A DNA stretch of 64,000 nucleotides from Ascoidea asiatica JCM 7603 (lineage: Eukaryota > Fungi > Ascomycota), in NCBI GenBank assembly GCA_001600695.1, contig BCKQ01000003.1, positions 291,849 through 355,848 on the forward strand, written 5' to 3'. The position numbers and the translations under genes were made by a program. This document shows, one piece after another, positions 6,198 to 34,110 of this stretch. Numbering within the stretch: the first letter of the stretch is position 1; the number at the start of each line of letters is the position of its first letter. Below the pieces are notes generated by a model. It saw nothing but the letters and a program-made list of their open reading frames with translations, was not told where the DNA came from and did no database searches.

Positions 6198-6359
6198 ATG
6201 CCTAGTTGGATATGTCATCAATGTGGTTCAAAAAACGTAGTGAAAACAAATATATGTTTAAATTGTAGACATTATAGACAATTTAGTCGTTATAGAAATG
6301 GAGAATTAATATTTAAAGTAGTTTGTTATGAATGTGAAGATACAATATCTAAATCATAA
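6198..6359 (+). CDS. 53-aa Cys-rich zinc-ribbon micro-protein (RanBP2-type finger plus an extra CxxC); not in the ORF track
   Basis: MPSWICHQCGSKNVVKTNICLNCRHYRQFSRYRNGELIFKVVCYECEDTISKS*. Exact W-x-C-x2-C-x3-N-x6-C-x2-C pattern; A at -3, A-rich leader, A/T-ending codons, T-rich 3' flank. Confidence 0.75.
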   Translation: MPSWICHQCGSKNVVKTNICLNCRHYRQFSRYRNGELIFKVVCYECEDTISKS

Positions 6360-6376
6360 ATTAATAATACAAATTT

Positions 6377-6446
6377 TTCAATCTTCAATCTTCAATCTTC
6401 AATTATCAATTATCAATTATCAATTATCAATTATCAATTATCAATT
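6377..6446. repeat. Heptamer tandem repeats (TTCAATC)3 then (TCAATTA)~6-7
   Basis: Read directly, immediately 3' of the 53-aa ORF. Confidence 0.85.
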
Positions 6447-7249
6447 TTAAATCAATAATTAATCAATTTAAATATTTCACATTTTATATTATCTTTTCAT
6501 AATTATTCATAATTCTTATTTCATATTTCTTAAATCATAAATCATAAATCATAAATCATAATTCATTATTCATTTTTCTTAAATCACTTAAAAACAAAAA
6601 ACAAAAAAATAACAAAAAAAAAAAATCATTAAAATTTCATTTTTAAAATTGTATATCTTATAACTTATCTTTTAAAAAAAAAAAATTATTATATTCTCAT
6701 TTAATTAATTGTGTGCTTTATTTATTATTCATTATTTATATTTTGTCGTTTATTCTTTACAGTTTATTGCTTTCATTTAAATTCATCTTATTTTTAGTAT
6801 ATTTTTTTTAGTGTGTTTTTTTTTTGTTTTTTTTCTCAAATCTAATAATGGTGGAAACTTTTTTATATCACTTTTTTACTTGTTGTCCTTTATATTCATC
6901 ATAATCTTTTTAATAGTCTTTTTTTTATTACTTAATGTAATGTGAATATAATAATAATAATAAATGTATTTTGAATTAACTGATTAATTGAATAATATTA
7001 GAGTTGTAGTGTATAAGATATTACTCATAGTATCTAAATTGTTGGATTAAGAAGAAAAAGAAGAAGAAGAAGAAGATAATCAGATTTAGAGATAGGTAAG
7101 TTTATGAGAATATAAGAAAGGCATTTTGAAGAATTAATGTTTAATTGTGCATTAAATTAACATTGTAGGAGATTTTCGTTAGTAATGAAATAAATTAATT
7201 ATCTTTTACAATAAGTAATTTTTAAGGTAAAAAGTATCTATGCATTTTT

Positions 7250-7903
7250 TGAGTCATAAAATTGATGATCTTTATAATTTTGACTTCTTTCAAAAGAAAA
7301 AAGAAAACATTATTAAAAGAATAAAAAAAAAGGTATGGAAGCTGGATACCTTTTTTTTTTATTATTATCATTTTGTTATTATTATTATATTTTTATCACT
7401 ATTTTACTATTTTATTATTTTATTATTTAAATAAAAGCACTGCATTTTCAGCTTTTCAACTTTTGTAACGGTGACAGTCAAAGTTAAGTTGAGTCAACTC
7501 ACAGAACACGTCTTAGAAACTCCTAGGAAATTCCAGGACACCGGAAGTGGGTCGCACGACCTGAATTTGACGCTTGACACAAAGTATGGTCAGGTTTAGG
7601 ACAGAAGCGCAGGTGCGGAAAGCAAAATCCGAAAACCGGAAAAAAATAACCGTGGTAAATTTAAACACCTTTTAAAATGGAATATTTTATAAACACGTCA
7701 GGTGATCAGTTAAAAAAACTGTAACGAGACCAGTTCTGCGGGTCTTGTGACTGATTTCCTCAAAACCCGCCCAGCCAACGCCACCCACGCCACTGGTTTC
7801 CTTCTTTGCTTGTTCTGTTCACGTGTTTCTGTGCTCAGTCATCGCGCACGGCCCGACCACTTTTTTTTCTTGCAGCTTTCCGTGTCTGGCTTCGATTGAC
7901 TCA
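7250..7903. promoter_or_regulatory. GC-rich promoter with three TGA(C/G)TCA Gcn4/AP-1 sites
   Basis: TGAGTCA at 7250 and 7490, TGACTCA at 7897; CACGTG at 7820. Confidence 0.6.
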
Positions 7904-8261
7904 TACTTTTCATTTCATTGCATGCATTTTATTGTAGCAGTGATGCAAACAGAGATAGCTCCAGTTTCTTCTTCTTCCATAATCAAAGTTGGTGAGTGAT
8001 GAGTGAAAAGTGAAAATGACTGAATCTGACTCCAGTTTTAGTCAAATAAATCATTAATCAAAACAAGCAAGTCATCATATTCACATTATTTATTAAACAA
8101 CTATCTTAATATTCATATAAATATTTATATAAATATTCTAGATTTGTCTTAAATTGATATATCTGTTTGCTGATTCAATTTAGTTATTCGATTTTTTAAT
8201 CAAAAACCAAATTAATATTACCTACTTTTACTACTTTATAATATAATAATCAATAATTAAA

Positions 8262-8273
8262 ATGTCAATTTAA
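8262..8273 (+). promoter_or_regulatory. Putative uORF (Met-Ser-Ile-stop) in the cyclin leader
   Basis: AAAATGTCAATTTAA in strong context about 200 nt before the main ATG. Confidence 0.45.
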
Positions 8274-8463
8274 ATTTCTAAAAAAATTAGGCAGGAATTA
8301 TTTTATTTTATCACATATTATCAATATTAACAAAATATTTTGATAATATAATATAATAAAATATCAATTGGCAATCAATCAAAAAAAACAACAACAATTC
8401 AATCAATCAATCAATAAATAAATTAATAAAATATATAATATAACATAGGAAATTATCTAAAAA

Positions 8464-9405
8464 ATGTCTTATAAATCCAATAATAATATCAATAATGAAA
8501 AGGTCTCTCAAATCTATAATGATTTACCACCTTTAATTCCACCTTCAGATTCAGATTTAGAATCAGAATCTGATTCTGATAATGATACTGATACTGATAA
8601 TGATAATGATTTGGATTTAGATTATGATTCAGATAATGATTATAACTCAAATTATAATCATGTAGACAATTATAATCATAATTATAACTATAATCATTCT
8701 TCAATTCCTAATTCTTATTCATATTCAAATTCAAATTCATATTCATATTCATATTCATATTCTAAGAATTATGGTTTAAAAAATCCATTTAGTGAAAATG
8801 ATTCTGAAATTTTAAAATATAAACAAATTCAAAATAAAAATTTAATCAATAATGTTATTATTAAAATTATAGTTAATAATTTAATTAATCAATATATTCA
8901 ATCAAATAATAATGAAGAATCCAAAATTAAAAATGATTTAAATTATATTACTATAAATTTAAAATCTTTTATTACTAATCTTTTAAAAAGATCAAAATTA
9001 TCTTTAAAAGAATTAATAATTTCTTCAATAATCTTAAAAGATTTTTTAATTTTAAATATTAATTCCAATTATACTTCTTCTTATTCAACAATTAATATTG
9101 AACAAAATTTAATTCTTTTTAAAAAAATTATTATTTCTTCATTAATAATCTCAAATAGATTAAAAAATAATTATAATTATTATCATAATAATACTAATAA
9201 CAATAACATTAACAGCAATGTAATTAATTATAAAATTTGGTCAAATATTACTGGTTTATCTTCTTTAGAAATTTCAACTTTAGATTTAATTAATAATAAA
9301 TTTAATATTAAAATTAATCCAAATAAAAATTTATCTTTTGAATTTAATAAATTAAAATTTAAATTAAATAATTTAGTTAAACAATTTATTATCACTGTTT
9401 CTTAA
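8464..9405 (+). CDS. Pho85-type (Pcl/Pho80 family) cyclin-like protein, PCL5/CLG1-like, divergent
   Basis: FITNLLKRSKLS...IIISSLIISNR...KIWSNITGLSSLEISTLD resembles the Pcl cyclin box; acidic PEST-like N-terminus. Confidence 0.65.
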   Translation: MSYKSNNNINNEKVSQIYNDLPPLIPPSDSDLESESDSDNDTDTDNDNDLDLDYDSDNDYNSNYNHVDNYNHNYNYNHSSIPNSYSYSNSNSYSYSYSYSKNYGLKNPFSENDSEILKYKQIQNKNLINNVIIKIIVNNLINQYIQSNNNEESKIKNDLNYITINLKSFITNLLKRSKLSLKELIISSIILKDFLILNINSNYTSSYSTINIEQNLILFKKIIISSLIISNRLKNNYNYYHNNTNNNNINSNVINYKIWSNITGLSSLEISTLDLINNKFNIKINPNKNLSFEFNKLKFKLNNLVKQFIITVS

Positions 9406-9923
9406 TTTATATAACCTTACATTAAATATATAACTCTTCAATTCTTAAATTTCTTCAATTCTTTCAATTCTTTTCTTTTTCTTTTCTTATTCACTTATTC
9501 ATTCATTAATTCATTCATTTATGTACTACATATTTCTCTATAGTTTTTGTTTTTGGTATTCTTCTGGACTTTTATATAATATCTTTTCAAATAAATATCT
9601 CTTTTTTTTATTTTAAATATTGTAATTATTCTAACAAATATTAAATTTCATTAAATCTAATGATAAAGTCACGTGTAAAATTATTTGCTAGTTCCTGTAT
9701 TTACACCATTTATAAAATCCCGTGTAAATCGTGTCACCAATGAAATAGTCTTAAATTAATCTTATCCAATACTTAATATCTCTAAGTGTAATAAACAGTT
9801 GAGTATATACAAATTGAATAATAATAATAGTAATCTGTTTATTTATCAATATAGATAACATAATTGTTATAAAGTTATTTAAAAAAGTTATAAATTTCAA
9901 TTATTTAACAATTATTCTTAAAT

Positions 9924-10346
9924 ATGGTATGTTTTATTTATATTGATATTCAAATATATATATATATATATTCTTTAATTTTAAAATTAATTCAAACTAA
10001 CAATTCAATTTATCTCTTTTATTTAGTCTGGTGGTCAATTTCCTTACCCAAAAGTATGTTACTACTCATTCATTTATTAATTAATCTATTTATTTTATAA
10101 ATTTGAAAGATTATTTTCTAACTAAATCAAATCAATTTTTAATAGCATGTATGGACACCTTCAGGTGGTTGGTGGTTTACACCAAAAAACTATAAAATGA
10201 ATTCATTAATTATTGGTTCAGCTTCAATAATGTTATTATATAGTGCTGCAACTTATTCAAATAATCATGAATTTGATCCAGCTTTAGAATATACTGAAGA
10301 TGATATAAAATCTTGGTCAAAAGCTGCTGCTAAAGGTCTTAAATAA
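9924..10346 (+). CDS. Complex I accessory subunit NUUM-like, 76 aa; join(9924..9926,10027..10053,10146..10346)
   Basis: Two GTATGT..CTAAC..TAG introns give MSGGQFPYPKHVWTPSGGWWFTPKNYKMNSLIIG..., with the YPKHVWxPxGGW motif and one TM helix. Confidence 0.85.
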
Positions 10347-11304
10347 TTTAAAATTAAAAAAAAAATTTAAAAATTCAGTTTTATTTTATATTCACTAATA
10401 AATAAAAAAAAAATTTATGAATATCAAATTTATACATTATATTCATTAAAAAAAAATTGAAAGTATCTTATAATCTAACATTTCATATCTTGATTAACTT
10501 TCTTTTTTAAAAAAATCAAAATCATCGAATTTAATAAAATATAAGCTTTACCGTAATAAAAATTTTATGTTTCCTTTCATATTATTTAAAAGTTTTTGAC
10601 TATAATTAAATCAAAGAGATTAGAATAGCTTATTCGAAATAAGAGATCCATCAGAATAGAAGTAATATAAATTTTCTCAATTAACGTCTTTTTGAAATAT
10701 TAAAATAATAAAAAAAACTAATAAATTTATAATGGATAAATATTGAAGGTTTCAATGTACCCTTTGACCTAATTTTTATTGTCATCAAACTTTTCTATTT
10801 TGGATAATTATCCAATAGAAGAATATATTGTTTCCAAGTCTAGTTGAGAATTTAAAAACAGTTAAAAACTTGCCTTTTGATTTAAAGCATTACTTAAAAT
10901 CACCACTTTTCAAATAAAAAAAATTAGCACATACATTGAGAAATGAAATATCTTTTTGGTGTATCCTATATTAATCAGAATTTCAAAAAAAGTTAGTGAA
11001 GTCTAAAAATCTCTGTTAACTTTTCTTGGAAAAAGTAGCTTTACAAACAATTAGAAAACGACTTGAAATGGATTATTCTTTTCTTTAATAACTCACAATG
11101 TTTTCGCATCTGACTATCAAAATATTTCCTTAACTGCTTTTCCAAGCCTGAAAAGTTTATCATCAGCATCATATCCTTTTTTCAAATGCAATATATGAGG
11201 AACTTTGACTTGGCCCATGATTTGATACTGCAATAAAGCTTCAAGCTTTTGTGACCACTTTTAATTGATTCTAGAAAATAAGGTTTAGGTTCATCGGTGA
11301 CTGC

Positions 11305-11344
11305 CGAAATTTCTAGAATTTTCCGGAATATTCTCGACTTTTCC
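11305..11344. promoter_or_regulatory. Heat-shock element: array of alternating nGAAn/nTTCn pentamers
   Basis: cGAAa tTTCt aGAAt tTTCc gGAAt aTTCt cGACt tTTCc upstream of a small HSP gene. Confidence 0.85.
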
Positions 11345-11786
11345 ACGGTTCTCACAAAATAAGGATATTTGCTTCTTTGTCTGAAGTTCTTTGTTTTATT
11401 TGATTTAAACTAAAATGAAAATATTCTCATTGGAAATCAATGAGTTTAATTGCAAAGAAAAATAGAATATACTAGAAAATCTTAGAACCAATTCGAATAG
11501 ATCAGTAGGATTTATTAGCCAATTTAATCAAAACTGTATTAAATCGAAAATTAATTGAAATACTTTTCTATTGTCTTTCATATATTTATCTATTCATTGG
11601 AAATAATATAAATATTGAAGATGTTTTCCAAGATTTCATTTTTTTTTTTATATTTTTGATTTCTCCATCAATTAATTAATTTAAAATCTATTAATCATAT
11701 TATCAATTAAATTATCAAACATATTATTATTACAACTAATTCATATTTAACTTTTATTTATAAAACTTTTAAATCAAAAATTAACA

Positions 11787-12359
11787 ATGTCTGCTTTTTT
11801 CTACTCTCCATTTTGGGAATTTGTTGATGCTATTGATGAAAATTTAAATCAAATTCAACGTGCTCTTCCAAAAAAAGAAAATTTAAAAGAAAAAGAAAAT
11901 AAAAAAATTACAAATAATGAAAATAAACAAGTTACAAAAACTAAAAGAAATGAACCAAGATCTTTAATGTCTAATTTCTTCAATGATACTAATGATTGGA
12001 ATTTAAATTTTTCAAATATTATTCCTCCAGTTGATTTAGTTAACAATGAAAAAGATTATGAATTACATGTTTCAATTCCAGGTGCTGAAAAAGATAAAAT
12101 TAATATTGATTTTAATAGAGAAAATAATTCAATTACAGTTTCTGGTAAAATTGAAGAACATAAAGAAGAAACTAAAGGTAATTTCAAATATCAAGAAAGA
12201 TCAACTGGATCATTTTCAAGAACTGTTGCTTTACCAAAGGATGAAAAATTAGATGAAGAACATATTGTTGCTAATTATACTGATGGTGTTTTAGTTCTTT
12301 CAATTCCTAAATTAGGTAGAAAAGAAAGTGAAAATATTCGTCGTATTACTATTTCATAA
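11787..12359 (+). CDS. Small heat-shock protein (Hsp20/alpha-crystallin; Hsp26/Hsp21-like)
   Basis: PPVDLV...YELHVSIPG...ERSTGSFSRTVALP...ANYTDGVLVLSIPK and a C-terminal IxI motif. Confidence 0.95.
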   Translation: MSAFFYSPFWEFVDAIDENLNQIQRALPKKENLKEKENKKITNNENKQVTKTKRNEPRSLMSNFFNDTNDWNLNFSNIIPPVDLVNNEKDYELHVSIPGAEKDKINIDFNRENNSITVSGKIEEHKEETKGNFKYQERSTGSFSRTVALPKDEKLDEEHIVANYTDGVLVLSIPKLGRKESENIRRITIS

Positions 12360-13136
12360 CTATGAATAACAAAAACAGTTTATCTATTTTTGAAATTTTT
12401 GTTTCAATGTTTTTTGATTTTTCTTCTAAATTTTTAGTCATTTCATTTTTTTTTATCTTTGTTTAGTTATAATTTTTTTCAAATAAATATTTATATTTCT
12501 CTTTAAAATTTCAATTTTTCTCATAAGATGATTCGAAAACACTGTAAAAATAATATAAAAGTAATTATACGAATGAAATAAATATGTGAGTAAGTTCCAA
12601 GGATATGCATTATATCTATTAATGTTAATGTTAATGTTAATATTAGAGAATAAAAAAAAATAAAGCGAAAAAATTTGAAAATGATTTAGAAAATAAAACT
12701 AAAATTAAATAGAAAAATGATGTCTTTTAAAGAAAGAAAAAAAAAAAAAGAAAAACAATTGGTGAATAAAAATTTTAAAAATTTTCTTTGGAAAAAAGCC
12801 ACTTTAAAAGTAACAGTTGAATTTAACAAGAATATATGATTATACTGGATATAACACAACAAATGTTAAAAGTATGTGTCTAATGATTAAGTTAGTGAGA
12901 AAAGTATGGAGATAATGAAATACAATAGCTAAAGTAATAAGAAAAATGGATAGAGATTAAAGCAATCGATAAATCTTTTTGAAATTCTTGGTTGTGTGGA
13001 AATTTTTTCCATTTATTTATTTTTATTTTGAATAAATAAAATTTTGATTCTAATTTACAATACTTTCTATAATTAGAGAGAATAAAATAATAATGGTATA
13101 ATGGTGAACATTGAAATTGATATTGATATTGAAATA

Positions 13137-13997
13137 TTAGTCTAAATCATCTAACCATCTTTTACGTAAAGTATTAATATTCATTTTTGTTGGACTAACA
13201 ATTTTTGATTCAGCACTATACCAACCACCATTTTCACTTGGTTGAGGTGCAGCACTTGCCATATTAACATAAGAAGTTCTTGAATAAGACCAACCTGGAG
13301 TTATAGTTGAATAAACGATTGGAGAAGCACGAATTGTACTATAATAGGATACAGCAGAAGTTGCAAATCTTCTTGACCAAGTAGTTACAGTTACAGTAGT
13401 ACCGGGTTGAGTTTGCATTGGAGCATATCTTGTTTTACCAGTTTGTAAAGTGTAAGTTACAGAAAATGAAGCAGAATTTATAGAATCAGTTGTTTCAGTA
13501 GTAGTTGTAGAATCTGTACCAGTATTTTGTATAGAATATTGAGCCGTTGGTGGATCATCGGATAATGAACCAGAAGGTTCAGTGGTTCCAGACATTCCAG
13601 AAAGTTTAAATCTTTTTGAATAATGGATTGTATAACCAGTTGAAAAAGTTGCATAAACTTGAAAAAAATAAACACCATCATCACCTTCACTTTCCTTAAT
13701 TTTTGCAGTATATGAATTACTTGTAATATCAGAAGAAGATACTTCATCACCAATAATATCTACTGCAGTTATATTAGAATTCGAACCTGTACATAAAGTA
13801 AATGTATAAGTTTCTGCATCAGTTACTTTTGGAGAAGAACCAGAATCTACCCAACTAATTACTACACTAGCATAACCACTAGAAACTTTGAAAGTCTGAT
13901 CAGCTAAAGGTTTTGAAATAGAAACATCACATAAAACAGTTGAAATATTCAATAGAAGAATTATCACAAATGTATAAAAATAATTTAGCACTATCAT
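13137..13997 (-). CDS. KRE9: Beta-1,6-glucan synthesis protein Kre9/Knh1
   Basis: Signal peptide from the ATG at 13997; SFSVTYTLQTGKTRYAPMQTQPGT..WSRRFATSAVSYY..TITPGWSY. Confidence 0.93.
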   Translation of the reverse strand: MIVLNYFYTFVIILLLNISTVLCDVSISKPLADQTFKVSSGYASVVISWVDSGSSPKVTDAETYTFTLCTGSNSNITAVDIIGDEVSSSDITSNSYTAKIKESEGDDGVYFFQVYATFSTGYTIHYSKRFKLSGMSGTTEPSGSLSDDPPTAQYSIQNTGTDSTTTTETTDSINSASFSVTYTLQTGKTRYAPMQTQPGTTVTVTTWSRRFATSAVSYYSTIRASPIVYSTITPGWSYSRTSYVNMASAAPQPSENGGWYSAESKIVSPTKMNINTLRKRWLDDLD

Positions 13998-14988
13998 TTC
14001 TTTATGAATATATTGAAACCTATGAAACAATAGAAATAATGTTTAGTCAAATCTTCCCTCAAGATTTTGATAAATTTTATTAAAGAATTTGTTTGATATT
14101 ATATTTTATTTATGAATATTTTTTGTGATAATGATTATATAAAATTTTCTTTCACGGATCTTTGAGCAAGGACAGACTAATATATTGTTATATTGATAAA
14201 ACAATATCTTTTTTCATTAATTAAAGAATATCAATAATAATGCTGTAATAATTGAAAATAACAAAGGTAGTTTACTTTTACAAATTCTCTCCAACAGACT
14301 CCAATAAAATTAAATAATAATATTCTTTTTGTTTTGAATAAAGCCAAATGTCATTCCAATCTTCGAAGAATAATCGTCATAACTAGGAATATCAAAATAT
14401 ATATTGTATATGGAGGGGTATTTGCAAGTAATAAATAATTATCTTGGTATTTTATGTGCTTATACCACTTTTCACAGGTGTCTTTTTCTCTTGAAAAGTG
14501 GATTTGAACGAAGCCTTTTGAGCTTGAGCTTAAGCCTTCAAAGCTGCAAGAGCATTTAAAAATTTGCAGCGCAATGTTTTTGGTATGAGAGAACTTTAGC
14601 GTGCTTCAAAAAAAAGTGCGCATTTATTGATTTTAATTATGCGTAATTGGATCCACTCCAATGGATTTTATAAAGCTGTACTCATACGTATACTTGACGT
14701 AAAGAATGCTTTACTACACATTAAGCATATAGTCACCTGACTGAAGCTGTATTTGAATATCCTGAGATTTCATTGGCGAGAAGCAAAAAGGTAATGGAGA
14801 CTGTAAATATGAGGATTTGGATTGTTCAAGCTTTCTCTCTGAAGATTCTGGTGAATTAGCTGCTCATGAAAACAAACTCTGACATTCATTTCATTATTTT
14901 TATTATTTCCATTATCACTATCTAATTGAAGTATATAAATCTTCAGATTTCTTCAAATTCACCTCAAAAATTATATACTATATTCCAA

Positions 14989-15374
14989 ATGCTTTCGAAA
15001 TTAGTTTTTTCAAATTCTGTTAAAGAATTAAGATTCCATTTTTGCCAGACTGGTGAAGCTTCATTGCCAATAAAGTATGTAAATTTGATTTAATCAAATC
15101 CAAAGCAATCTTATTCAATTCAATTCAATTTCAAAGTTTCATAATCAATTTACTAACTTTTTATCTTTTCTTTACTTTATTTAGACAATTTTTAACAAAA
15201 GAATATTCTTCAATAAAAAAAAGTAATCCAAGTTTACCAATATTGATTAGAGAAGCTAATGGAATTAAACCAACATTATATGCTAGATTTGATTATGGTA
15301 GAGAATCAAAATTTCCATTAAATGGTCAAAGTATATCCGAAATACAAACTCTATTAAAAACTTTAACAAAATAA
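14989..15374 (+). CDS. Complex I subunit NDUFA2/B8 (NI8M), 91 aa; join(14989..15074,15185..15374)
   Basis: GTATGT..TACTAAC..TTAG intron; VKELRFHFCQTGEAS...NPSLPILIREANGIKPTLYARFDYGRE. Confidence 0.93.
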
Positions 15375-15595
15375 ATAAGTAATATAATCATTCATTATCA
15401 ATTATTTTTTAACTTCAAGTGAAACTAAGTATATTCTAAACTTTTTGATATAAATCATTTAATATTTAAAATCATTATTTACAAGCTTTATATTACAATA
15501 TATATATATATCTTTTTATATCATCATTTTTTTACCTAAAGTTGAATAAACATTAAACATTCCATAGTAAATTCCATTTTTCATTTTTTCTTTCA

Positions 15596-16138
15596 TTAAT
15601 TAGACTTATCACTTCGACTTTTCCAAATATCTGGCTTTTCTTTATCTATTTTATTCATCATTGGCTTTTCTTTTTTATCAATAACTTCTTTAGCTAATTT
15701 TGCATGTTCTAAATCTCTTTTTCTTTGTGATCTACATTGTTCCCATCCAATTGTTGATCCTAATAATCCACATCCAAATCCCCAATTTGCAGCTTTTGAT
15801 GGATTTTTTGAAAATAATAGAATTACAGTTGTAACAACTCCAATGGATGAAAATCCCAAAATTCCTGCATCTCGAAAACATGGCATTTGAACTAATTTTG
15901 AAAATTTAAAATCTTCAATTTTAACTTTTTGAAATGCTAAATTCATTTCTTCTGGTTTTTGAAATTTTGGTAAAGGTTTACCATCTTTATCCAACGGTAT
16001 ATTACCTTTACCATCTGGATTAAATCTTGGTTCTAAATCATCCAAAAGAACTTCTTTATTAGTATTTATTTCATTATTATTTATAGATATTTCATCATCT
16101 TTTTTATTTTTTGAAAAACTTGGCCAATACCATGCCAT
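15596..16138 (-). CDS. COX20: Cytochrome c oxidase assembly factor Cox20
   Basis: MPCFRDAG..G...KAANW..GLLGSTIGWEQCR motif; two TM segments. Confidence 0.92.
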   Translation of the reverse strand: MAWYWPSFSKNKKDDEISINNNEINTNKEVLLDDLEPRFNPDGKGNIPLDKDGKPLPKFQKPEEMNLAFQKVKIEDFKFSKLVQMPCFRDAGILGFSSIGVVTTVILLFSKNPSKAANWGFGCGLLGSTIGWEQCRSQRKRDLEHAKLAKEVIDKKEKPMMNKIDKEKPDIWKSRSDKSN

Positions 16139-16539
16139 TTTGTTTTAGATTTATATCGGAGTATTAATACAGTATATAAAAACTTGAGAAAAAAATATTC
16201 CTTTTTATTTAATATTCTGATAATCCATGTATCTAAAACTTTTCAATATTTTAAATTCAAATAATCTAATCATTCAATAATTTATGAAATTGGTTTATCA
16301 TTATGATCTTGATATTCTTTATCTGTTTCTACTGTGGTTTATTCACTTACCATTTTTGCTTTCTCACCGCTAAAAAGCTTCAAAATTTAATCGAATCATT
16401 CCTAACCCCGGGTTACACCTCATTAACCTTATTTATTTCAACAGCTATTATCGCTACAGTATACAGTATATAAATAATTAAAGACCATATTGTTTATTCA
16501 CATATTGTACATTTTATTAAATTAAAAAATAACTTCAAA

Positions 16540-20142: not shown

Positions 20143-20369
20143 GTTATAATAAAATCATTTATTTCTTCTACAGTAAATATATCAAAAGATAAATAAATAA
20201 AAAGAATAATTAAAATATAAATATAAATTCAAATATAAATTTAAAAATTGTAGCGTTAAAAAATAAATAAAAGTGTATAAAAAGCTATGAAGTAAAAATG
20301 CGGAATCAGTTGAAACCAGAATTATGGAACTACTAAGTACGTTATATTAAAATGAAATTATTTTATTTA

Positions 20370-21263: not shown

Positions 21264-22402
21264 TATAATGAAAGTATTTAATTATTGATTATCGTTTATT
21301 ATTTATGATTCCAATTGCAATATTTCTGTTTAATTTTGTTATTCTTTTTATTAATTTCATTATCCTATTGACTATCATTATGATCAGTGCTTTTTACCAC
21401 CACTGCAGTCAACGTTACTTAGATTCTGATACTCAATCTTAAGTTCCTCGAGCATAAAAGCATAAATGAACAGCACTAAGCTACTGAGCTTAAAAAAAAA
21501 AGGCAATCACGTGAGCATTAGTCAGTGCTGAATCAGCAAAAAAATATAATCCGTGAGGTTTGAAATCCACGGGGTTTTATTACCGCGGGGTCTACACTGG
21601 AAAAATATGCACTTAGCAGTGAAAACGAGCAAATTAGCATGTGAGCGCGGCAGAGACCAGGGATATGGATTTAATTGATAGTAATGCAGTTCTAAGTTTA
21701 ACAAAGCAACTGGCTGCTAGCTGGTTGCGTGCCCTTTTAGCAACGCAATTCTATTCCTGGCCAAATGGCATCACACTAAATGCACACAACCCAAGGATTA
21801 TCACAATACAAAACAATATTCTTCAATCTCATTCAATCAGATACAATTGAAGCAAAAAAATAGTGTGACTTGAGTCCCTATTTATTAGAAGATTGGCTGT
21901 TATTAATGATAATCAATTTAATATATATATAACTATGGATTTTGGAAGTGTCTCTACATAGAGTAAATTTTAGAGAGAAGAACCTTATTGGTGGTGGGTG
22001 GTTTAGAAATACGAAGTCTTCTGCTATTTTCCATATTAAATTCTTTCTCTGCTTTAAGCAAAACGTAAATACTACAACTCAGAGACGAAGAAAACAGCTC
22101 AGGTGACTCTCTACCGCTCCGTCCGTGGCAATTGTGTGCACATGCAATCTAGAAAACCATTGGAGTAAAGTGAGATCTAGAGAATGCATCTAGAATGCGT
22201 CTGAGTGGAATTTCAGATGCTGTCCCGGACTGGGAGACCTGGTGAATTCAGTGAATTGCTATCCCTTTCTTTATTGCTGCTGGGATTTGTCGCTGGTTCT
22301 GCGTGTGAAATTGCGCTCCTGACTCAGCTCAGGCATCTAACCCTAACACACTGGCTGGCACAGGCATCTAGCACACCTATTCAATTGTCTCTATCAATGC
22401 CA

Positions 22403-22452
22403 TTGCTATTATTGCTACTACTCTTACTACTGCTACTGCTACTGCTACTGCT
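22403..22452. repeat. Degenerate (CTA/CTG)n trinucleotide microsatellite
   Basis: Read directly; it produces the spurious poly-Leu ORF 22205..22474. Confidence 0.8.
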
Positions 22453-22730
22453 ATCTCTTCTTCCACTACACTAACACCACGCCCTCCTGCTGCTATCTCT
22501 ATCAATTCCACTTCCACTTCCACTTCCACTATCAAATATGAATTGAATATGAATTACCGCTGAGAATAGAACAAGAGCATGATAACCACCAAATAACACT
22601 AAAAACACTAAAAATACTAGCACTTTTACTCCCGGTAAGAATACTCTTTTTTGCACTGTTTACACTGCTTTTATTTATTTTTTTATCAATTATCAAAGAA
22701 AATTTTTACTGTGTTTCTACCGTAAGATAA

Positions 22731-22757
22731 CTCTCTCTCTCTCTCTCTCTCTCTCTC
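22731..22757. repeat. (CT)n microsatellite
   Basis: About 13 CT units. Confidence 0.9.
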
Positions 22758-23032
22758 ACTTTGCATTTCTACAAATTTACATCCTTTTTTGCTTTTTAAA
22801 ATTCTTACTTTCAATTTCCTGAAGTTGATTCTATTCTTTTATTCTTTTATTCTTTTTTTCTTTTATTCTTTTTATTAATCAATTACTTGTCAATTAATTA
22901 ATTAAATAATTATATATATCAATATATAAATATTATAATAATAATAAAATATTCAACTATTTAAATAATTCTTTCAAATTATCAATTATAATAATCAATT
23001 ATCAAATAATTTAAAGTAAAAAAAAAAAAAAA

Positions 23033-23959
23033 ATGTCTTCAATTCCTCCTCCAGTAAATTCTGTTCCATTACAAACAACTCCTTTATCATCATCATCTAT
23101 TCCAACTACTCATTCTACTACTTCATCCTCATCTAAATTATCTCCATGTGGAAATTCTGGTTCATGTTCAACTTTTTCAATATTAAAATGGGATAATCCT
23201 CAAAAAACTGGTAAAATTTTTGCATCAATTATTTTATCTTTATTATCATTTAAATATCTTAATTTATTAAATATTTTTTTTCATTTTTCTTTTATTGCTT
23301 TATTTATTTCTGCAGCTGCTGAATATTTAGGTAAATTAATTACTGGTAATGGGTTTGTATCTCATTTTAAACCAATGAATTCAAATAAATGTTCAAATAT
23401 ATTCAATAATATAATCTTACCTCATATTTCAATTTTAATAAAAAATTTAGAATTAAATATTCAAAATTTATTTTATTCAAATGATGTTGAAAAAACTTTA
23501 AAAGCTGCAGGTTTATCTTATTTATTATATAAAATTACTTCTTGGTTTTCTTTATATACTTTAGTTTTCTCTTGTATTTGTTTTACTTTCACAGTTCCTG
23601 CAATTTATTCAAAATTTCAAACTGAAATTGATAATGGTGTAATTACTTATACTAATTTAGCAAAAGAAAAAGCAATTAATTTACAATCTGTTGCTCAAGA
23701 AAAATCAAAACCATTATTAGCAAAAGCAAGTTCTAAATTTTCTCCAATTACAAATTTTTATAATAAAAAATTTCCAACAAGAACTGCAACTACAACCGTT
23801 AAATCAACTGAAAATTCAACTAATTCATTAAATAATAATATTAATTTACCTTCTGTTCCAATCTCAAATCCAGAATTTGTTCAATCAAAATCAAATCAAA
23901 TTCCATCAAATTTAAATTTTGGAATAGAAAAAACAAAACAACAAATTAATTCATTATAA
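23033..23959 (+). CDS. RTN1: Reticulon
   Basis: ILKWDNPQKTGKIF, two long hydrophobic hairpins, TLKAAG..Y.LYKITSWFS, FTVPAIY..FQTEID. Confidence 0.92.
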   Translation: MSSIPPPVNSVPLQTTPLSSSSIPTTHSTTSSSSKLSPCGNSGSCSTFSILKWDNPQKTGKIFASIILSLLSFKYLNLLNIFFHFSFIALFISAAAEYLGKLITGNGFVSHFKPMNSNKCSNIFNNIILPHISILIKNLELNIQNLFYSNDVEKTLKAAGLSYLLYKITSWFSLYTLVFSCICFTFTVPAIYSKFQTEIDNGVITYTNLAKEKAINLQSVAQEKSKPLLAKASSKFSPITNFYNKKFPTRTATTTVKSTENSTNSLNNNINLPSVPISNPEFVQSKSNQIPSNLNFGIEKTKQQINSL

Positions 23960-25867
23960 TTATAATCTTAATTAATTATAATGATATATATATATATACT
24001 TTTAGAAGTATGTCTGTCTACTTGGGAAATTTTATATAATAAAATTATATTATGTTATGTTATGATATGTTATGATAAATGATAAATGGTAAATTATATA
24101 TATAATTTATATATTTAATTAAACAAAGGTAATAATGAATGGGATAAATAAACATATATACGCTCAACTCAATTAAATTTAATTTTCCTCATAAACTATT
24201 CTCTACTTATTTTTCTAATTATTTTTTTCATCTATTTTTCTATTAAAAAATATAATATTCAAATCTATTTGAATTCCTTTGATATTTTTTGAAATTTTTT
24301 TTTTTTACAATACTTTAATACTTTAATACTTTAATACTTTTAATACTTTGATTATTTTACTTATTTACGTTCAATTGATTTATATTATCAGAATATTGTC
24401 GCTTTTTATTTATTACTATTTTTATAATTATTATCGTTATTACCATTGCTATTATTATTATTATTACTACTATTATTACAATTATATTATTATTATTATT
24501 ATTATCGTTTTCCTTATCCTTAGTTCCTTTTTTCAAATAACGTTACTAATTTTTTTATTCTTTCTAACAATACTTTTTACAATTGATTCAAATTCTTGAT
24601 TTACAAATTTTTATTCTATTTAATTTCACATTTCATTATTTTAAAAATTTCTATTTTACTATAATATCGTATTGTGAGGTATTTATTTACTTATTTTACT
24701 TTACCATACTATAGTAATTCAAATTTTATTTTAATACTTATAATTGTTTTTTTTTGTTTTCATTTAATCTACATTTAATTTATCTAATTTATCAATTCAA
24801 TCAACTATATATTTTGAACTTAATCCTCTATATTTCTCAAACAATCTACTTCAAAAGTCAAATTGACTGATATTTCAACCCATTTCAAATTTGGTAATTA
24901 AAACTATTCTCATCATTCAAACTTACTCTGTTTTTTTTCTCAAGTCTTAGATATAATATCCTCAATTTCTTTAAGTTCTTTGACCTCTATTTTTACTATT
25001 ACTTCTATCCAATTTCTCCTTTAATTTGAACCAAATTTTTATTATTTCACAGTTATTTACCTGTTTTATTGTCTTAGTAAATAGGGGTAAATCCTCACAA
25101 GAGCAAAGTGTCCCAATTAGGAATAAAATCTCGCTTGAGACCCCTTGTTTGTTTTCCAAGAATCTTATTTTTTACCCGAAGTATTTACAGTCACATGTCT
25201 CTGCTAGGACTACCACAAAGATGATCTTAAATAAAACCTGAATATCAGCTGACCCGAGTCACATGATAGAAATTTACCCACGTGCTTGAAGTCCATCACT
25301 TCCGCTTCTTACGAACTCTTCTTGCCTCCGGATTTGTCTTACATCCGCCATTGTCAACTGTTTAATGCTGATATTGCAAATCACCCATGAAAAAGCATAC
25401 CGACACTAACAAAAAATTGTATTTATTAACGCTTTTACAATTTCGTCAATATTCAATACTGTAGTTAAATTCATACTCTATTAAAATACTCTTTATTCTT
25501 TTATTAAATTCTTCAATAATATCTATAATCTTTTAATTCTTTTGAATTGCCTTAGATTCTTTCATAACAAAACTATTAATGTATTTATAAATTAATCAAA
25601 ATATGAATCCTATTATTTAATTCCCATAACTTTCATTTTATTTTGATTTTGATTTCAAAAATATTTATTTCTATCTCATCGGGAAATAATCAACGATAAT
25701 TTGGTATAAAATTTTACTCAATAAAGAATTGTAAAAATAATCAAAGGATTATAGAAAAAAAAAATCTATAACAAAGCTTTAGAATAATTCATTTATTATT
25801 ATTTAGCCATATACTAAGAAAAATAGGAAAAATAGGATAAAAAATAAACTTTTTTACTTTAATAGAA

Positions 25868-27942
25868 ATGTTGGTTCCTCCAGCTAATTTTAACCTAGTT
25901 GAAACTGGTATATGTATGTTTTTTTTTTCTTTATTTCTTTTTTTTTAAATCATTAATCATTGAAAAGATTTTCAAGAGAGCTTAAAAAGAAATCAAAAGA
26001 ATCAATTACTAATTATTAAACATTTTTTCAACTAATTTCTTGAATTTCATGAATTATTTTGATTTTTTTAATTATAATTTTAGATCGATGTTCAAAAATT
26101 GATCAAATAAATTTTCAATTTTTAAAAAATTTAAATTTAAAATCAATTGTTTTATTAGATGTTGAAAAACCTTCAAGAGTTTTTAAAAATTTCTTAGAAG
26201 AAAATAAAATTAAATTATATCAATTAGGTAATCAATCTGAAAATGAAATTCATAATTATAATGAATTTGAAAATGATAATAATAATATTAATAACAATAT
26301 TGAAATTGATAAAAGGAAATCAAATATAGAATATATTCAAACTTATAACTCTAATTTCAATTCAAACTATAGCTCAAATTTGATTTCAAATAATAATTCA
26401 GTTAACAAATCAAATAAAAAATCAACCGTTTTTAAATACTTAGACCCTTCATTAAGTTCAAATTCAAATTCAAAGTCTGATGATTGGATGTTAATTAAAA
26501 AAAATTTAATTATAAAAATTTTTGAAATTTTATTAAATAAAAAAAATTATAATCTAATTTTAATTGATCAATCTCAAATTATTATAAGTTTATTAAGAAA
26601 ATTACTAAAATGGTCTTTTACTTCAATTATTAATGAATATAGATTATATTCAAATAAAAATTCAAATTATTTTGCTGAAATTTTTTTAGAAATTATAACT
26701 TTTAAATTATTACCTTCAAATTATATTAAAAAAGTTAAAGATAAATCAAAAGATAAAATAAAAGATAAATCAAAACATGAATTAAAAGAAATTTCAATCA
26801 ATAGTTCAATTGATAATTCAATTGATCAATCAAATTTAAAAATTTCTGAAAATAAAAATCAAATTCAAATTCCTTTATCTAATTCAAAATTAAATTCTAA
26901 ATTTAATTCAAACTTAAACTTTAAATCAAATAGTTATAGTCAATCTAATACAAATAAAAGAAATAATTTCAATTCCTATAATCAATTAAATCCAATAAAT
27001 TCTTATAATTCTTATAACTCTTATCATTCTCCAGTAACTTTAAATCAATATAATAATTCATCTAATAGTTTATCTAATAATACAAACATAGATAATAGCC
27101 CAATTAATAGTTTAGATAATGAATCTTCTAAATCTCCTCAAATTCCAGAAATATTACTAAAAAAGATTGAAAATAGAAAAACTAAATCAAAATCTAAAAA
27201 GAATTCAACTATAAAATCTGATGCTCCAATTATCTTAAATCAAAAACAACTCAATAAAAAACATAAAAAATCAGTTTTGACTGATAAATTAATCAAACTT
27301 AATCTAAACTCTAACCCAGCATCTTCAAATTCAAATTCAAATTCAAATTCAACTGATACTTCAAAATTTAGTCATAAAGATTACGATAATTTTTACAATT
27401 CTTCTTCAAAAGTTTCAGAAAATTCATATCATACTCAATTAATAAAAACAAGTACCATTTCAAATCATTCTTCTCATAATATTTCTCAAGATATAATATC
27501 GAAAACTATTTACAGTACTTCAAATTCAAGCTCAAATTTAAATACTTTAAAAACTGAAGCTAGTTTGTCTATAACTTTACCAAATTTATCAAAAATATCT
27601 TCTTCTACTTTAGATACTTCAATTTCTTCATTATCTTCTATAACATTATCTCCAATTTTATTAAATGATATGGATCACATACATGATATCAATGATATAA
27701 AAGATATCAATGAACTTAATAAAATAAAAACAAATCAATCTGATATGTTTAATTCAAACTTAAACAATGATTCAATTGGTGAAAATGAGATTAAGGATTA
27801 TAATTTTTATAAACCATTAGAGAAAAATTATTTTAATGTGAAAGTTATCAAAATTAGATTACCTAATGAGGAATTATTACCGGATTGGTTTATATTTCAA
27901 AGAGATATGTGGGAAGAAGAATTCAGTCTTTTAAATAAATAA
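25868..27942 (+). CDS. OCA4: Oca4-like Siw14/Oca-family (pseudo)phosphatase; join(25868..25913,26084..27942)
   Basis: Splicing intron 25914-26083 gives MLVPPANFNLVETGIYRCSKID; also DDWMLI, WSFTSIINEYR and LPNEELLPDWF. Confidence 0.88.
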
Positions 27943-30900
27943 GTTAATTATTAATATTTCAACTCTATAATTTTATTATTTTTTATATCTTTTCTAATAA
28001 TTTCTTTCTTTTTGTCTTTTTTTTTTCATTGAAAAAAAGTATTAAATCTGGAAATGGGACTAGCTAAATGTTTCATTCCTACTTCTTGTTTAATTGTTTT
28101 CATATTTTAGAAGTGAAATGATTGCAACCTTCATTATTTTCATATGTAATGATAGGCTTAAATATCAATTTCAAATAATTTTTAAAATTGAAACAGATGG
28201 AAATGATAGTTTTTTGTGATTATTTTAATTTTTGATTTAATTATATTTTTTTATTGAGAAACGTTTTCACAATGAAATTTCAAAAAAAAGTTTTATTCAG
28301 ACTTAATATAATAATATCCAAATATTAGGTGATAAAAATAGAGTTGGAGATTTGATGTTCGAAATAGTTAACAGCCCATTGAAAAAAACTAATGATTCAT
28401 TAAAATTATGACTTCGTCAAAAAATACTCAGCTTCTAGCAGAGAATGGTCCTTATGATTGGTTTTAAACTTGAATTGGCTGAACTTCTTAACTTGAAAAA
28501 AAAAAAAATTCAATAAAATCAGTTTCCCAGATAAAGAAAATAGCAAGCATGTATATCTATAAAAAATGATGATAATCAACCCTGAAATCGGTAAAGATTT
28601 GAATGAGATTATCTTTATTATAACCGAATAATTATCTAAATCACAAAACTGAAAAAGATTTTTATTTCGGCATATTTTTCCTTGAAACTTATAAATATAA
28701 TGAGAAAAAAACTAACTGTTTGATATCATAATATGACCCTAAACCAAAAATCAATTATTTTCAAGAGTATTTATTACGTTGGAAAAGTTTTTTGAAATGA
28801 ATTAGTGTGTTGTTACTATGTTTTTTTATAAAAAATTCGTAACTTAGTTTTCTACTAGCTTTCCTAGTTTATTCTTAGATCGACTTTGAAATCAAAGATC
28901 GTAGAAATAAAAAGAGAGGAACTTTGAAGGATGGAAAATTTGTTCCTAATAAAATTTCTCTTAAGGGAAAGATAAATTTGAAATTCTCTGGAACGCCTTT
29001 TTCGCTAAAACAAAAATAAGGGCTATTAATTAATATTTTTTGAAGTGAATTGAGCATCTTTTTTTCTGTGAAATAATATATTTCGAATAAATGGGCTGCA
29101 TTTTTTAAAAATTTTGATAAAAATAATATTTTTTTGTTATCAATCGAGTACGAAACTGTCATACGTAGTCAATTCAAATATGTTGAATTTTTTTCGCTTT
29201 ATATTCAAATAAATATTTTGAGCTTGCTATGTAGTTATAAAGATGTATTCAGAGTCTATCGCTTCTTGAGATTACATACAAACTACACTTATGCTGGTGA
29301 AATTTTTGTTTATGACTTCTTTTATTAGACTTTTTTATCGATTATCTTGTTGAAACAAGATTTTAACAATATTTTACATTCTAGAAAATTTTCTTCTACA
29401 TGAAATAAAAGCTTTCACCTTTTCCCAGAATATCAGTTGAAATTTTTTGAAATTTTTTTATTTTTTTGAAGTGATAACTACTTACAATAAAGTACCTCAT
29501 TGGAATTAATATCGATAGTTTTTGTTACTTTGTATCATTAAACTGGCTGGTAGTTTATCATTAAAAATATCTATCATTGAGCTTTCTTTTTGTTTTATGC
29601 ATCTTTTTTCAAAAAACAACAACCATCAAGGAGGCCAAAAAAACAAACATTTCTTTTTATTCAAATGAAATTCTTGATTTTTAAATGAATTATTTCTCTA
29701 AAGTACCTTATACGAATAAAGGTAGTCTTTACGAAAGTTACACTACTTCCGATAACCACAAATCTTTTTTTTTGAAAGCATTTTTTTTCCTTTTATGATA
29801 AAAGTTAAGTTCTATTCGTGATGATTTTCTAAATAAATCTATTACGAATCTCACTTTTTTTTCAAGAAAAATCCCTTGAGTCAAAGTTGAAATAGATTAA
29901 GTACATTTCAATAAAATTTGACAACATAAACATTATTAATCAAAAGCCATGATCAACGATAAATGATCTTAAAGAGGTAATCTAAATAACCGGATGAGCA
30001 CCAGAAATTTAATGAACAAGCTACAGCTAATCCTGGAGTAACATAAGCGAATATTTCTCAAAAATAATCATGATTATTTTCTAGAGAATTCTCGCAAAAA
30101 TCTAAAAAACAATTCTGGGATAAATTTTTCAGAATGCTGCCAGATTATTTACGTAAAAGCAAATAGTTATTAAAAAGCATTTACTGAAGAAAGAAAATAT
30201 CAAAGTATGGAATTTTATCTAAATTTATCTTCCTTTTTCAATTTAATCTGTTAAAGAAAACGTATTTGATATTCAATATGCTTATTTTTTATTTTAGTCT
30301 TGCTATTTTTTTTTTCTTGTGATAAATCGAGAAAATTTTTGAATTTTTCATTGCAATTGGTACGAAATCGATCATTATTTAAGTTTTTATGATTCAGATT
30401 AGGTTATAATTTTCGCTAAAATTTCTTTGAAATTATCTGTTTTTGATTTTGAATTAGAATATGCTAAATACATTTTTTGATTCTTGGTTTAAAAGTTAAA
30501 AGAAATTCAAAAATGTTCTAAACTCAACTTTATTGGTTAATGAAGGACGCAAATCTTGAAGGGAAGATTCTCTAACAGTTCTTCTGAAGTATTCCTATTT
30601 TCAATCAAATAGCATTATTTCTTGTCAGAATATTTTTATCGGATAACGCACATTTTGCAATTGTGCATAATAACTAGGATAGAAAAAAACCCTACTGAAA
30701 GTATTTTGCACTAATTCTTATCTGTTTATTTAAACACACACAAGTGAAATGAAAAATTTCAAGACAAAAGCACCTTTTTTATTCAGCTCTGTGAATTACT
30801 TTTATTACAGTATAATATTGCCTCAAAATAACAACTGGTAAACGTAATTTTAAAAGAATTTTTCTGTATTGAATTTGAATCTACCGACAAATACAAGATA

Positions 30901-33873
30901 ATAAAAAAAAATATAGTTGACTCAATAATTGGCTTAAGTGCCTTTAAATTCTTTTTTTTTTCATTTACCTCGAAGATCTTTTTTTTCAATTAAAAAAAAA
31001 AAATTGAATTTAATAACATATTCTTGCTTTGAAGCATATTGCATGATTTATTTGAAATAAAATTATTTTAAAAAACTTTTACTTGGAAATAATTTTCTCA
31101 TCATTTGTAAATACCTCAAAAGAACATTAATGAAATTAAAAAATATTCATTATTAGAAACTGAATCAAAAGCATTTTTTTTTCAATATTAATTGAAAAAA
31201 TATCCTTAAATTACGTAATATAATTTCAAAAATTGATTTCGGATTGACCGTATCAAAATGTATAGTAGTGTAAGCCGGCGTACGTATTCAAAAAAGGTTT
31301 ATGGGTCACATGTACATTCTTTACGACCACATTATGCACCTGTCGTAATTTACAGTCCTCGCCTTGCATAAATACGCGTACCCGTTAATTTTTCAGGGTA
31401 CTAAGATTATTTGATACATTTGTGATTATTGTAAAGTTATAATAAATTATGAAAATAGAAATTATTTGCACTTTTCCAGTAGGGATTACTAGAGTTTTTT
31501 GATTTTTCATAAGTGAATGCTTGTACTTGATATTTTTTTTTTACTTTCTTCTGTATTCTTAAGAAAGATTAGAAACATTAATAAAAGAGCAAACGGTGTT
31601 TTGGCCTCGTAGAAGCCAGATTTCATTTCGTTTGACTTTTCATAAACTGAATAGAATTGAATGTCTGTTTGATTTTTGAAGAAATAGATCTTTAAAATGG
31701 TTTATAGCACTGACTTCAATAAGATTCTATTATATTTTATTAAAAAGAATAGAAATACAAACCAGAAACCACCATGTTTATCAAGTAGGATTTTTTTTTT
31801 TTTTTTTATCTTAAGAATAATGAAACAAACTCAGTAAACTAAATTAAGCCTGCAATTAAAAAGTTTCCCATATTCGCCTTAGTATAAATTTTTCAGAATA
31901 GTGAACTTATAACTATAATCGTGCGGTATTTATCAACCGATACGTTTTTCAACTGAGCTTTTTAATAAAAAAAATTTATTTAATTAAATTTAAATAAAAA
32001 CAGATTTTTCCACATACAGTAATTAACAGTGAAAATTGAATTTTTTTGAAAAGACGATAAAAATGCTCTTAAAACATCATTTCAAATTACAAATTTTATG
32101 AAAGCTGTCAACCCAATAGAATGTGCATAATAAAAATCTTCAAGATATAATACAGTGAAAATATATTACCGTTCAAACGGTTGGCATCTTTAAAAGATTG
32201 GGTGATTTTCCTTTTTAGGTGTTTGAATGTTATTTTTTGTAACAGATTATACAATTTTTATAACAGAATATCTTTTGAACGATAAATTTAAACTATGATA
32301 AGCCAGTTACAAAAATGATGATTTATAATTCCTTAATTTATTTATGGTAAAATTAATTTTAGAGTCTTTTTTTGGAACAAAAATTATATTTTATACCATA
32401 TCAAAAAAGTTTCTTGAAAGTAATTTTTGAGAAGTAATTAATCATTTTTAGACTTTGATTAAAGTCTATAATTCAAGGGTTTTAGGGCTTATTTTTCATT
32501 GATTTCTTTTTCAATAGAAATTTCATTAAATTTTCTGTATGCTTCAAAAATTCAGAAAGATATCAAATAAATTTTCCAATCATCTCTCCTACTTATAATT
32601 ATAATTTTTACAAATGAACTTTTTTGAAGCTGCAGATAAATTATTTTCTTTTTTTTATATTACTCCTGGATTTTTGAAAAATTTCCAATTAAATTTCAGA
32701 AACTCAAATTATGAAACTAATTTCTTTCAACTTCATAAATGAAATCAATCAACTTCGATAGACTAATTATTAACAGAGGGTTTTATTCAAAAGAGAATGA
32801 AAAATAAATTCTGTATACCTTTGAAATAAAATTCGATTTTCGAAAGCAAAAAAAAAATCGTTCAACTTAGGCTTAAAAAATGGTGCAATTGAAATAAATA
32901 TTATTTATACTTCAATAGGTATTGTATTGATACTTATAGTAGACTAAAGTAATCTGTCTGTTAGCTTAAACTTGATTTAATTGCTTCATACAAATCACAA
33001 AAACTATAATAATTATGAATAGGCTGTGATAACGTCCTGGGAGGTTTTTGGGCTTTTAGTGTAAATACTTCTAATTTAACTAAAACCAGAAAATTTAGGG
33101 TCGCCAACAATAAATAATAAAATAGATAATAAATTGGATGTAAAGCCTTGAAAAGTTGGTATGAGACACGACGAGACACAAGTAGACCGGGGCTGCATTT
33201 CTTAAAGCAGCGTCTGACTTCAACCGTTTTAAAACCGAATTTTCAATAAAATTTCAAATAAAATCAGCCAAATTTTGAAGTACTTCAAAAAATTAAAATT
33301 TATGATTTTTGATAATTTGGTATTCAAAAACACTTACAGTAAGATCTGTAAGGTCATATTCTTGTTTAGCTTTTGTTAAATAATATCTTTTAAGATCAGT
33401 TCTTTTATTTTCTTACGATACTGCTTCTTAGACTGACTATGGTAATCCATTATCATAGGCTAATAATTAACATTATTAACATGTTAACAATCTTCAAAGT
33501 CCTCTAAGATTATTTGATATTCCATTACTGTACTTCAAAAAAGAAATAGTAAAGAAGAGCAGTTGATTTCATCCAATTTTTTTAAATAATGAAAGAATAT
33601 AAGTATAAGAGAATTTTCCCTTTTATTGAATTCAAGAACTTCTTTCTTATTTTTTAATTCATGAAGTTTAAATAATCTTTAACAATAAAAGTAAATAATA
33701 TCTTAATCAACAGCTAATTATTAACTTCTAATATTGTATCATAAAATATCATATACTAAAATATCTTATAATTTAAATTTAATAAAAACTTTATAATAAT
33801 AGTTTTCTTATAAAATCAAAATAACAATTTCAAAAACTTTTCAATTTTTCAAATTTACAATACTTCTTTCAAA

Positions 33874-34110
33874 ATGGGTTTAGTTCAAACAAGATGGATT
33901 TGTTGCAGAAGCATGAGTGCTGGTGATTGTTCCAAAATTCATGATGATATATATGATATAGTGGATGGACCTCGTCCAACTTGTCATTTCTGTGGTCATA
34001 AAGTTTGTTCTACTTGCAAAATTATTTGGCATGGTCCTCCACCAGGATCATTTACTGGAGCTCTTTCTCAACCTAAGCCAAGAAGATGGATAGAAATTAA
34101 TCATGCTTGA
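33874..34110 (+). CDS. 78-aa Cys/His-rich putative zinc-binding micro-protein
   Basis: WICC-x7-C...CHFCGHKVCSTC; AAAATG context; genome-typical A/T-ending codons; clear GC step relative to flanks. Confidence 0.8.
   Translation: MGLVQTRWICCRSMSAGDCSKIHDDIYDIVDGPRPTCHFCGHKVCSTCKIIWHGPPPGSFTGALSQPKPRRWIEINHA

Follow-up and report, generated by a model that had tools for sequence, protein, structure and literature searches.

Two small open reading frames (ORFs) were studied in a 64,000-nucleotide stretch (the window) of contig BCKQ01000003.1 from Ascoidea asiatica JCM 7603. The contig belongs to a 20.3-Mb assembly. The GC content of the window was 24%, and its proteasome beta-6 protein was nearest to that of Ascoidea rubescens DSM 1968 (81% identity); the host genome is that of an AT-rich, Ascoidea-type budding yeast. 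ORF1 (6198-6359, forward strand) is a micro-protein gene of 53 amino acids (aa) with the residues W4, C6, C9, C20, C23, H25, C43, and C46. ORF2 (33874-34110, forward strand), a micro-protein gene of 78 aa that is conserved in A. rubescens, carries W8, C10, C11, C19, C37, C40, H42, C45, and C48. Coordinates and residues agreed with the initial annotation of the window, and its statement that the two ORFs occupy the two largest empty intervals holds among ORFs of at least 120 aa, i.e., for the gaps 4141-8463 and 27943-36587. No tRNA or Rfam matches were found in these two gaps, relaxed thresholds included.

The codon-usage score, calculated against the long genes of the window, was positive for both ORFs in their own frame only. 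The GC content at third codon positions (GC3) was 0.07 in ORF1 and 0.15 in ORF2, far under that at the first and second positions (GC1 and GC2), which is the typical coding pattern here; in ORF1, GC1/GC2 were 0.30 and 0.39. ORF1 and ORF2 are thus more than chance ORFs. Unusual CUG decoding has been reported for the Ascoidea clade. Because neither ORF contains a CTG codon, their translations are unaffected. In the Pfam scan, neither ORF reached the cut-off of any family, and the top sub-threshold matches were DZR for ORF1 (E 7.5e-4) and IBR for ORF2 (E 0.0075). Both had been regarded as orphans. This status was overturned, since paralogues exist for ORF1 and a syntenic orthologue, strongly conserved, exists for ORF2.

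The orthologue lies at L003:6093-6329, in the part of A. rubescens that also carries the PRE7 orthologue (locus L003, whose positions 1-6329 are KV454476.1, 142711-149039). It encodes 78 aa, of which 70 are identical to ORF2 (90%), a higher identity than those of PRE7 (81%) and ERD2 (79%). FUN14, PRE7, and ERD2 follow downstream, and their order matches that of the window. Between ORF2 and the orthologue, 35 codons differ, 27 of them only synonymously and eight by replacements. The ratio of nonsynonymous to synonymous substitution rates (dN/dS), a check against a syntenic orthologue that the initial annotation had proposed, was run for ORF2 and gave 0.05 at a synonymous rate (dS) of approximately 1.1 by the Nei-Gojobori method. 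In the DNA, conservation sets in six bases ahead of the ATG, ends at the TGA, and is at background level outside. ORF2 is certainly a genuine gene.

The N-terminus of ORF2, MGLVQTRWICC (33874-33906, forward strand), contains W-I-C-C, and residues 1-14 (MGLVQTRWICCRSM) are identical in both species. The first six residues, MGLVQT, fit the N-myristoylation consensus (PROSITE PS00008). C19 is Leu in the A. rubescens orthologue and is therefore not a conserved ligand, which corrects the Cys set of ORF2 as first described. Relative to RTN and Y_phosphatase2, the orientation of the ORF2-FUN14-PRE7-ERD2 block is reversed between the genomes, so the upstream neighbours of ORF2 differ. Overall, two local inversions were seen between the window and the A. 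rubescens loci L003/L004, i.e., 14989-16138 (NDUFA2-COX20 pair) and 33874-39169 (ORF2-FUN14-PRE7-ERD2), and RPL11 and coatomer-beta were placed differently.

An unannotated, fast-diverging family was recognized in the genome. It is defined by the signature W-x-C-[C/H]-x-C, 8-30 residues, C-x2-C-x-H-x2-C-x2-C. A DNA pattern for the core C-x2-C-x-H-x2-C-x2-C had 23 matches in the genome and 0-2 in the reversed control. Simple repeats, a RING finger (L009), and an RBR ligase (L015) among the 23 do not belong to the family. Fourteen matches lie in small ORFs, ORF2 itself not counted. In 11 of these, W-x-C-[C/H]-x-C, which was outside the search pattern, was found 9-30 residues upstream, and the other three (L007, L011, and L013) carry a variant of it. 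The first knuckle was also searched for by itself: W-x-C-C-x-C gave 86 matches against 22 in the control and added five members, and W-x-C-H-x-C gave 10 against 0-2 and added one (L180). One more was obtained by a profile hidden Markov model (HMM) scan of the whole 166-kb contig C23. The family therefore comprises at least 21 unannotated ORFs of 43-132 aa besides ORF1 and ORF2. Most of them have 43-80 aa and L013 has 132 aa; L012 and L016 run off the stretch examined and may be longer. In Pfam, no model reached its cut-off on any family member. When the own genome was searched by tblastn with ORF1 and ORF2, only the queries themselves were returned, and every paralogue later found by pattern was missed.

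The conserved positions were read from a MAFFT alignment of 22 sequences, which predates L180. Four Cys are invariant, and conservation is 90% or higher at the Trp, at the His, and at another two Cys. At the middle position of the first knuckle, 21 of the 22 sequences have a Cys or a His, so that this residue appears to behave like a metal ligand. Two paralogue pairs showed dN/dS values of 0.34 and 0.43, and the family is therefore under selection yet diverging quickly.

Seven members lie on contig C23, at approximately 70.0, 119.7, 120.1, 140.0, 143.7, 157.4, and 160.7 kb. Two of the seven are in the last 10 kb, a stretch without any ORF of at least 200 aa, and this contig end may be a subtelomeric or otherwise fast-evolving region. 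On contig C2 (2456510-2457240, minus strand), the ORF L182:1-459 (more than 153 aa) has W-V-C-H-Y-C, a distant C-G-K-C, and then an N-rich tail. It could be a divergent family relative of greater length.

ORF1 was compared with a family HMM of 19 members from which ORF1 and ORF2 had been left out. It scored 25.3 bits (E 1.6e-4 in a search space of approximately 281,000 genome ORFs), which was the top score among 1421 ORFs of the window and the A. rubescens loci, and none of 2000 shuffles exceeded 14 bits. By hhalign, ORF1 matched the family with 94% probability over residues 2-27. The first knuckle, W-I-C-H-Q-C, is of the W-x-C-H-x-C form also found in L005, L010, and L180. The segment W4-H25 (6207-6272, forward strand) reads W-x-C-H-x-C-x3-N-x6-C-x2-C-x-H, i.e., a half resembling the RanBP2 zinc ribbon and then a His. 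The terminal C43-x2-C46 (6324-6335, forward strand) is displaced by a 15-residue insertion: it stands 17 residues past the His and not directly after it as in the family core, and MAFFT aligns it with the last CxxC of the family. The same variant occurs in L180, so that the last CxxC of these two is moved 12-15 residues downstream. L180 has 57 aa, starts with MP, reads W-Y-C-H-M-C-S-S-K-N in its first knuckle region, and has a distal CxxC; it aligned with ORF1 over the full length (BLASTP E 2e-5, 33% identity). Because of the HMM score, the hhalign result, and the layout shared with L180, ORF1 is, as far as its sequence tells, an H-subtype member of the family and not a decayed copy.

The membership of ORF2 is less firm. 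The exact family core is present, as C37-x2-C40-x-H42-x2-C45-x2-C48-x4-H53 (33982-34032, forward strand; one of the 23 pattern matches), with W-I-C-C upstream. It was estimated roughly from composition that W-I-C-C at 25 residues before an exact 12-residue core would arise by chance in approximately 1 in 10^4 cases. These features suggest that ORF2 belongs to the family, which we regard as probable though well short of assured. ORF2 is probably a slowly evolving member, predicted to be N-myristoylated. Of the initial proposal that ORF1 and ORF2 form one undescribed family, the part on ORF1 was borne out by its HMM score, hhalign match, and L180, and the part on ORF2 came out as plausible only (6-13 bits against the HMM). 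The proposed HMM-HMM comparison, run here against the family profile, gave the same division between the two ORFs.

Taken together, we consider with moderate confidence that ORF1 and ORF2 are genuine stand-alone genes with one Cys/His signature, and that their products would act as adaptors built on a zinc module. Several observations weigh against this. In ORF2, the first knuckle reads W-I-C-C-R-S, i.e., the Trp and two Cys are kept and the last Cys is Ser (S13), and C19 is not conserved. ORF2 scored 6.2 bits and its orthologue 13.1 bits against the family HMM, with genome-scale E values of at least 1, and hhalign gave 60% over 14 residues only (37-50). A direct BLASTP between ORF1 and ORF2 was not significant. 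The neighbourhood of ORF1 was absent from approximately 36 kb of the A. rubescens contig (L003, L004, and L187); local rearrangements have moved it away from this stretch. Among 1.84 billion representative proteins, searched exhaustively by phmmer, ORF2 had one spurious match only. AlphaFold2 gave confidence (pLDDT, predicted local distance difference test) values of 45 for ORF2 and 66 for ORF1, and these poor models were used for no claims. The lone phmmer match, P0121, was rejected as a tandem-repeat translation without the Cys pattern.

Among the alternatives, the best surviving one is that ORF2 is a real conserved gene unrelated to the ORF1 family, i.e., a separate IBR-like or single-zinc-knuckle micro-protein with convergent Cys spacing. 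It would probably be N-myristoylated and possibly palmitoylated on C10/C11, and so membrane-anchored. We regard this as somewhat unlikely. The family resembles the IBR domain and the Rcat half-RING of RBR ubiquitin ligases (PF01485) in the C-x2-C-x4-C-x2-C spacing with a His in the x4. IBR was the sole Pfam match of ORF2 (residues 18-55), the ten best named ESM-Atlas feature matches were all IBR families (0.87-0.92), and C45-x2-C48-x3-W-H53-G-P has the C-terminal spacing of IBR. The broken first knuckle (C-C-R-S), the non-significant family HMM score, and the MGLVQT start, identical in both species, also point in this direction. However, the IBR match was under the cut-off (16.8 bits against 24.3), and the final His-x4-Cys of IBR is incomplete, with no Cys four residues past H53. 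Weak IBR matches were also obtained for other members (L011, E 0.029; L078, E 0.044), and IBR-likeness therefore does not set ORF2 apart from the family. ORF1 had no match to the IBR model. Unlike IBR, the family has no flanking RING1/RING2 and no terminal His-x4-Cys, and its first knuckle is a C-x2-C with Trp, not a C-x4-C. ORF1 and ORF2 are stand-alone, start-to-stop ORFs and are not placed between RING1 and Rcat; the true RBR protein of this genome is L015. The combination of W-I-C-C with the exact core likewise argues for the shared family.

It is improbable that ORF1 is a decaying or non-functional family copy, or a chance ORF. Its coding score was low (8.8 bits, 0.16 per codon), and there is no CxxC directly after the His. 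On the other hand, an open frame of 53 codons was estimated to be less than 1% likely in random sequence of the same composition, the start context is A-rich, and the GC3 is depleted as described above. All eight candidate ligands are kept, and neither alternative frame past His25 contains a CxxC. Since L180 keeps the MP start and the displaced CxxC at 33% identity, the layout has been maintained.

The RanBP2-type zinc finger (PF00641), known from Nup153, ZRANB2, RBM10, and the NZF of Npl4, is also a small Trp-led zinc ribbon with four Cys. Residues 4-23 of ORF1 fit W-x-C-x(2,4)-C-x3-N-x6-C-x2-C exactly, in the form W-x-C-x2-C-x3-N-x6-C-x2-C, as do several paralogues, and ORF2 does not. Weak sequence matches to the RanBP2 fingers of RBM10 and Nup153 were found in the PDB. 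That ORF1 is a minimal RanBP2-type zinc finger, binding RNA or ubiquitin like the known RanBP2/NZF fingers, is nevertheless decidedly improbable. It scored 6.7 bits against PF00641 (E 5.7), far under the 27-bit cut-off, ORF2 had no match, and a genome-wide scan with this model returned five matches without ORF1. The ORF1 sequence lacks the T-F pair through which NZF contacts ubiquitin and the N-F...R residues with which fingers of the ZRANB2 type contact RNA. Unlike RanBP2 fingers, the family carries one more Cys/His within its first knuckle, as well as a conserved His and an additional CxxC, and its module makes up the whole protein of 43-80 aa. The extra conserved putative ligands of ORF1 (H7, H25, C43, and C46) are shared with the new family.

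It is scarcely credible that ORF2 forms the final exon of a long gene with introns, as implied by the public A. rubescens gene call (L003 1-6329, forward strand; 597 aa) that ends at the TGA of the ORF2 orthologue, because codons 1-5 (M-G-L-V-Q) are kept through synonymous changes, an in-frame stop lies five codons upstream in A. rubescens, and neither species has an AG acceptor ahead of the ATG; furthermore, DNA conservation starts just before the ATG and the upstream gene differs between the genomes through the inversion. The 597-aa call is probably a mis-joined fusion that hides the 78-aa gene.

Other zinc modules were also compared. The best profile matches in the PDB, all non-significant, were cross-brace fingers (RING, B-box, and the FYVE-like finger of Slp4/rabphilin), i.e., the MID1 B-box (E 0.03) and Slp4 and MSL2 RING (E 0.06). 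In Slp4, the elements are arranged as C-x2-C...C-x2-C-x-H-x2-C-x2-C...W-x-C-x2-C, an order that differs from the family. Unlike the cross-brace fingers, the family has no C7-x2-C8 following its core, with ORF1 and L180 as possible exceptions. Pfam models of RING (C3HC4) gave only sub-threshold matches (zf-RING_10, E 0.022; zf-C3HC4_3, E 0.09), and most members lack C7-C8. A likeness of ORF1 to Rpb12/ABC10-alpha, the best PDB sequence match (E 0.08), was rejected with the second knuckle out of register. Neither the sequence nor the profile searches of the PDB returned anything significant, and when the model of ORF1 was compared with the PDB by Foldseek, no match had an E value below 2. ESM-Atlas features, used as leads only, suggested IBR-type clusters in the case of ORF2 and generic zinc ribbons in that of ORF1.

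The signature was also searched for outside this genome. A DNA pattern for C-C-x-C...C-x2-C-x-H-x2-C-x2-C over metagenome contigs gave 120 matches, of which approximately 13 were convincing. Most of the 120 were discarded as poly-Cys translations of TGY repeats, and a low-complexity match in a human-gut metagenome assembly (L119) was not used. The Trp, which was outside the search pattern, is present in L067, L083, L091, L101, and L102. Stand-alone small ORFs with the signature were found in L067 and L091, and two tandem copies in one frame in L102:129-404. In L047:9644-11362, ankyrin repeats and a winged-helix domain precede the signature, which stands at the C-terminus of a long ORF of NLR-like architecture, and in L080 the signature is at the C-terminus of a long ORF with C2H2 fingers. 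Pfam leaves the signature module uncovered on the metagenome ORFs as well. From the domain architectures, these contigs seem to be of fungal origin. Protein word searches with ORF1 and ORF2 gave no candidates, which is uninformative because a length filter applied and small ORFs are rarely annotated. Literature searches with the signature motif strings returned chemokine-receptor noise or nothing.

The DNA around ORF2 was compared by blastn, and window positions 33598-34110 aligned with L003 5840-6329. The aligned block of approximately 275 bp upstream of the ATG (33598-33873, forward strand) includes TATAAGTATAAG / TTTTCCCT near 33597-33622 and is likely the core promoter. The tract further upstream (27943-33597) is free of genes, and neither conservation nor coding potential nor a known RNA was detected in it: none of its ORFs had a coding score that was clearly positive, comparison with A. 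rubescens by tblastx and blastn found nothing, and Rfam gave no match. At the A. rubescens orthologue, at least 6 kb upstream are likewise without a long conserved ORF. Because dS is approximately 1.1, the 275-bp limit of the alignment neither supports nor excludes a long promoter. Family members on contig C23 lie in gaps of approximately 1 kb to more than 5 kb. Large empty surroundings are common for the family, not universal.

Some further features of the window were recorded. Microsatellite-like arrays lie directly 3' of the ORF1 stop, at 6378-6446 (caatctt / caattat units) and 6536-6566 (aatcata units). A GC-rich patch of approximately 600 bp (7441-8040; up to 57% GC against 24% in the genome) is located just upstream of a cyclin-like gene at 8464; Rfam gave no match in this patch, and none of its ORFs was convincing. 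A smaller GC-rich patch is at 4201-4380. A tandem tRNA cluster at 41738-42289 consists of two tRNA-Asp(GTC) and one tRNA-Gly(GCC), spaced approximately 155-185 bp apart.

For the family as a whole, the eight conserved Cys/His positions would coordinate two zinc ions within a compact module, whose first half would be a RanBP2-like zinc ribbon and whose second half would have the C-x-H-x2-C-x2-C spacing of RING/IBR/Rcat fingers. Such a fold may offer a zinc-stabilised surface to which a protein or a nucleic acid binds, and the micro-proteins may be small adaptors or regulators. The tightly controlled adaptors or metal/redox sensors of the initial annotation are likewise hypothetical roles. More broadly, it is possible, though we put it forward tentatively, that the signature marks an undescribed two-zinc domain that is fungi-wide and was expanded in Ascoidea-type yeasts to more than 20 stand-alone, fast-evolving genes missed or mis-joined by gene callers, with ORF2 as a deeply constrained, N-myristoylated member of conserved cellular role.

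Micro-proteins of less than 100 aa routinely escape annotation. ORF2 is better conserved than the adjoining proteasome subunit, yet it was absorbed into a long spliced model in the sole related public genome. About two dozen small zinc-type genes share a signature that lies outside all Pfam models, and pattern and profile scans recover such families, which are invisible to BLAST-level paralogue searches and exhaustive protein-database searches. Should the module prove to be a new zinc-binding fold, it would add a domain to the eukaryotic zinc-finger repertoire, and the family would provide natural minimal versions of it for structural and binding studies.

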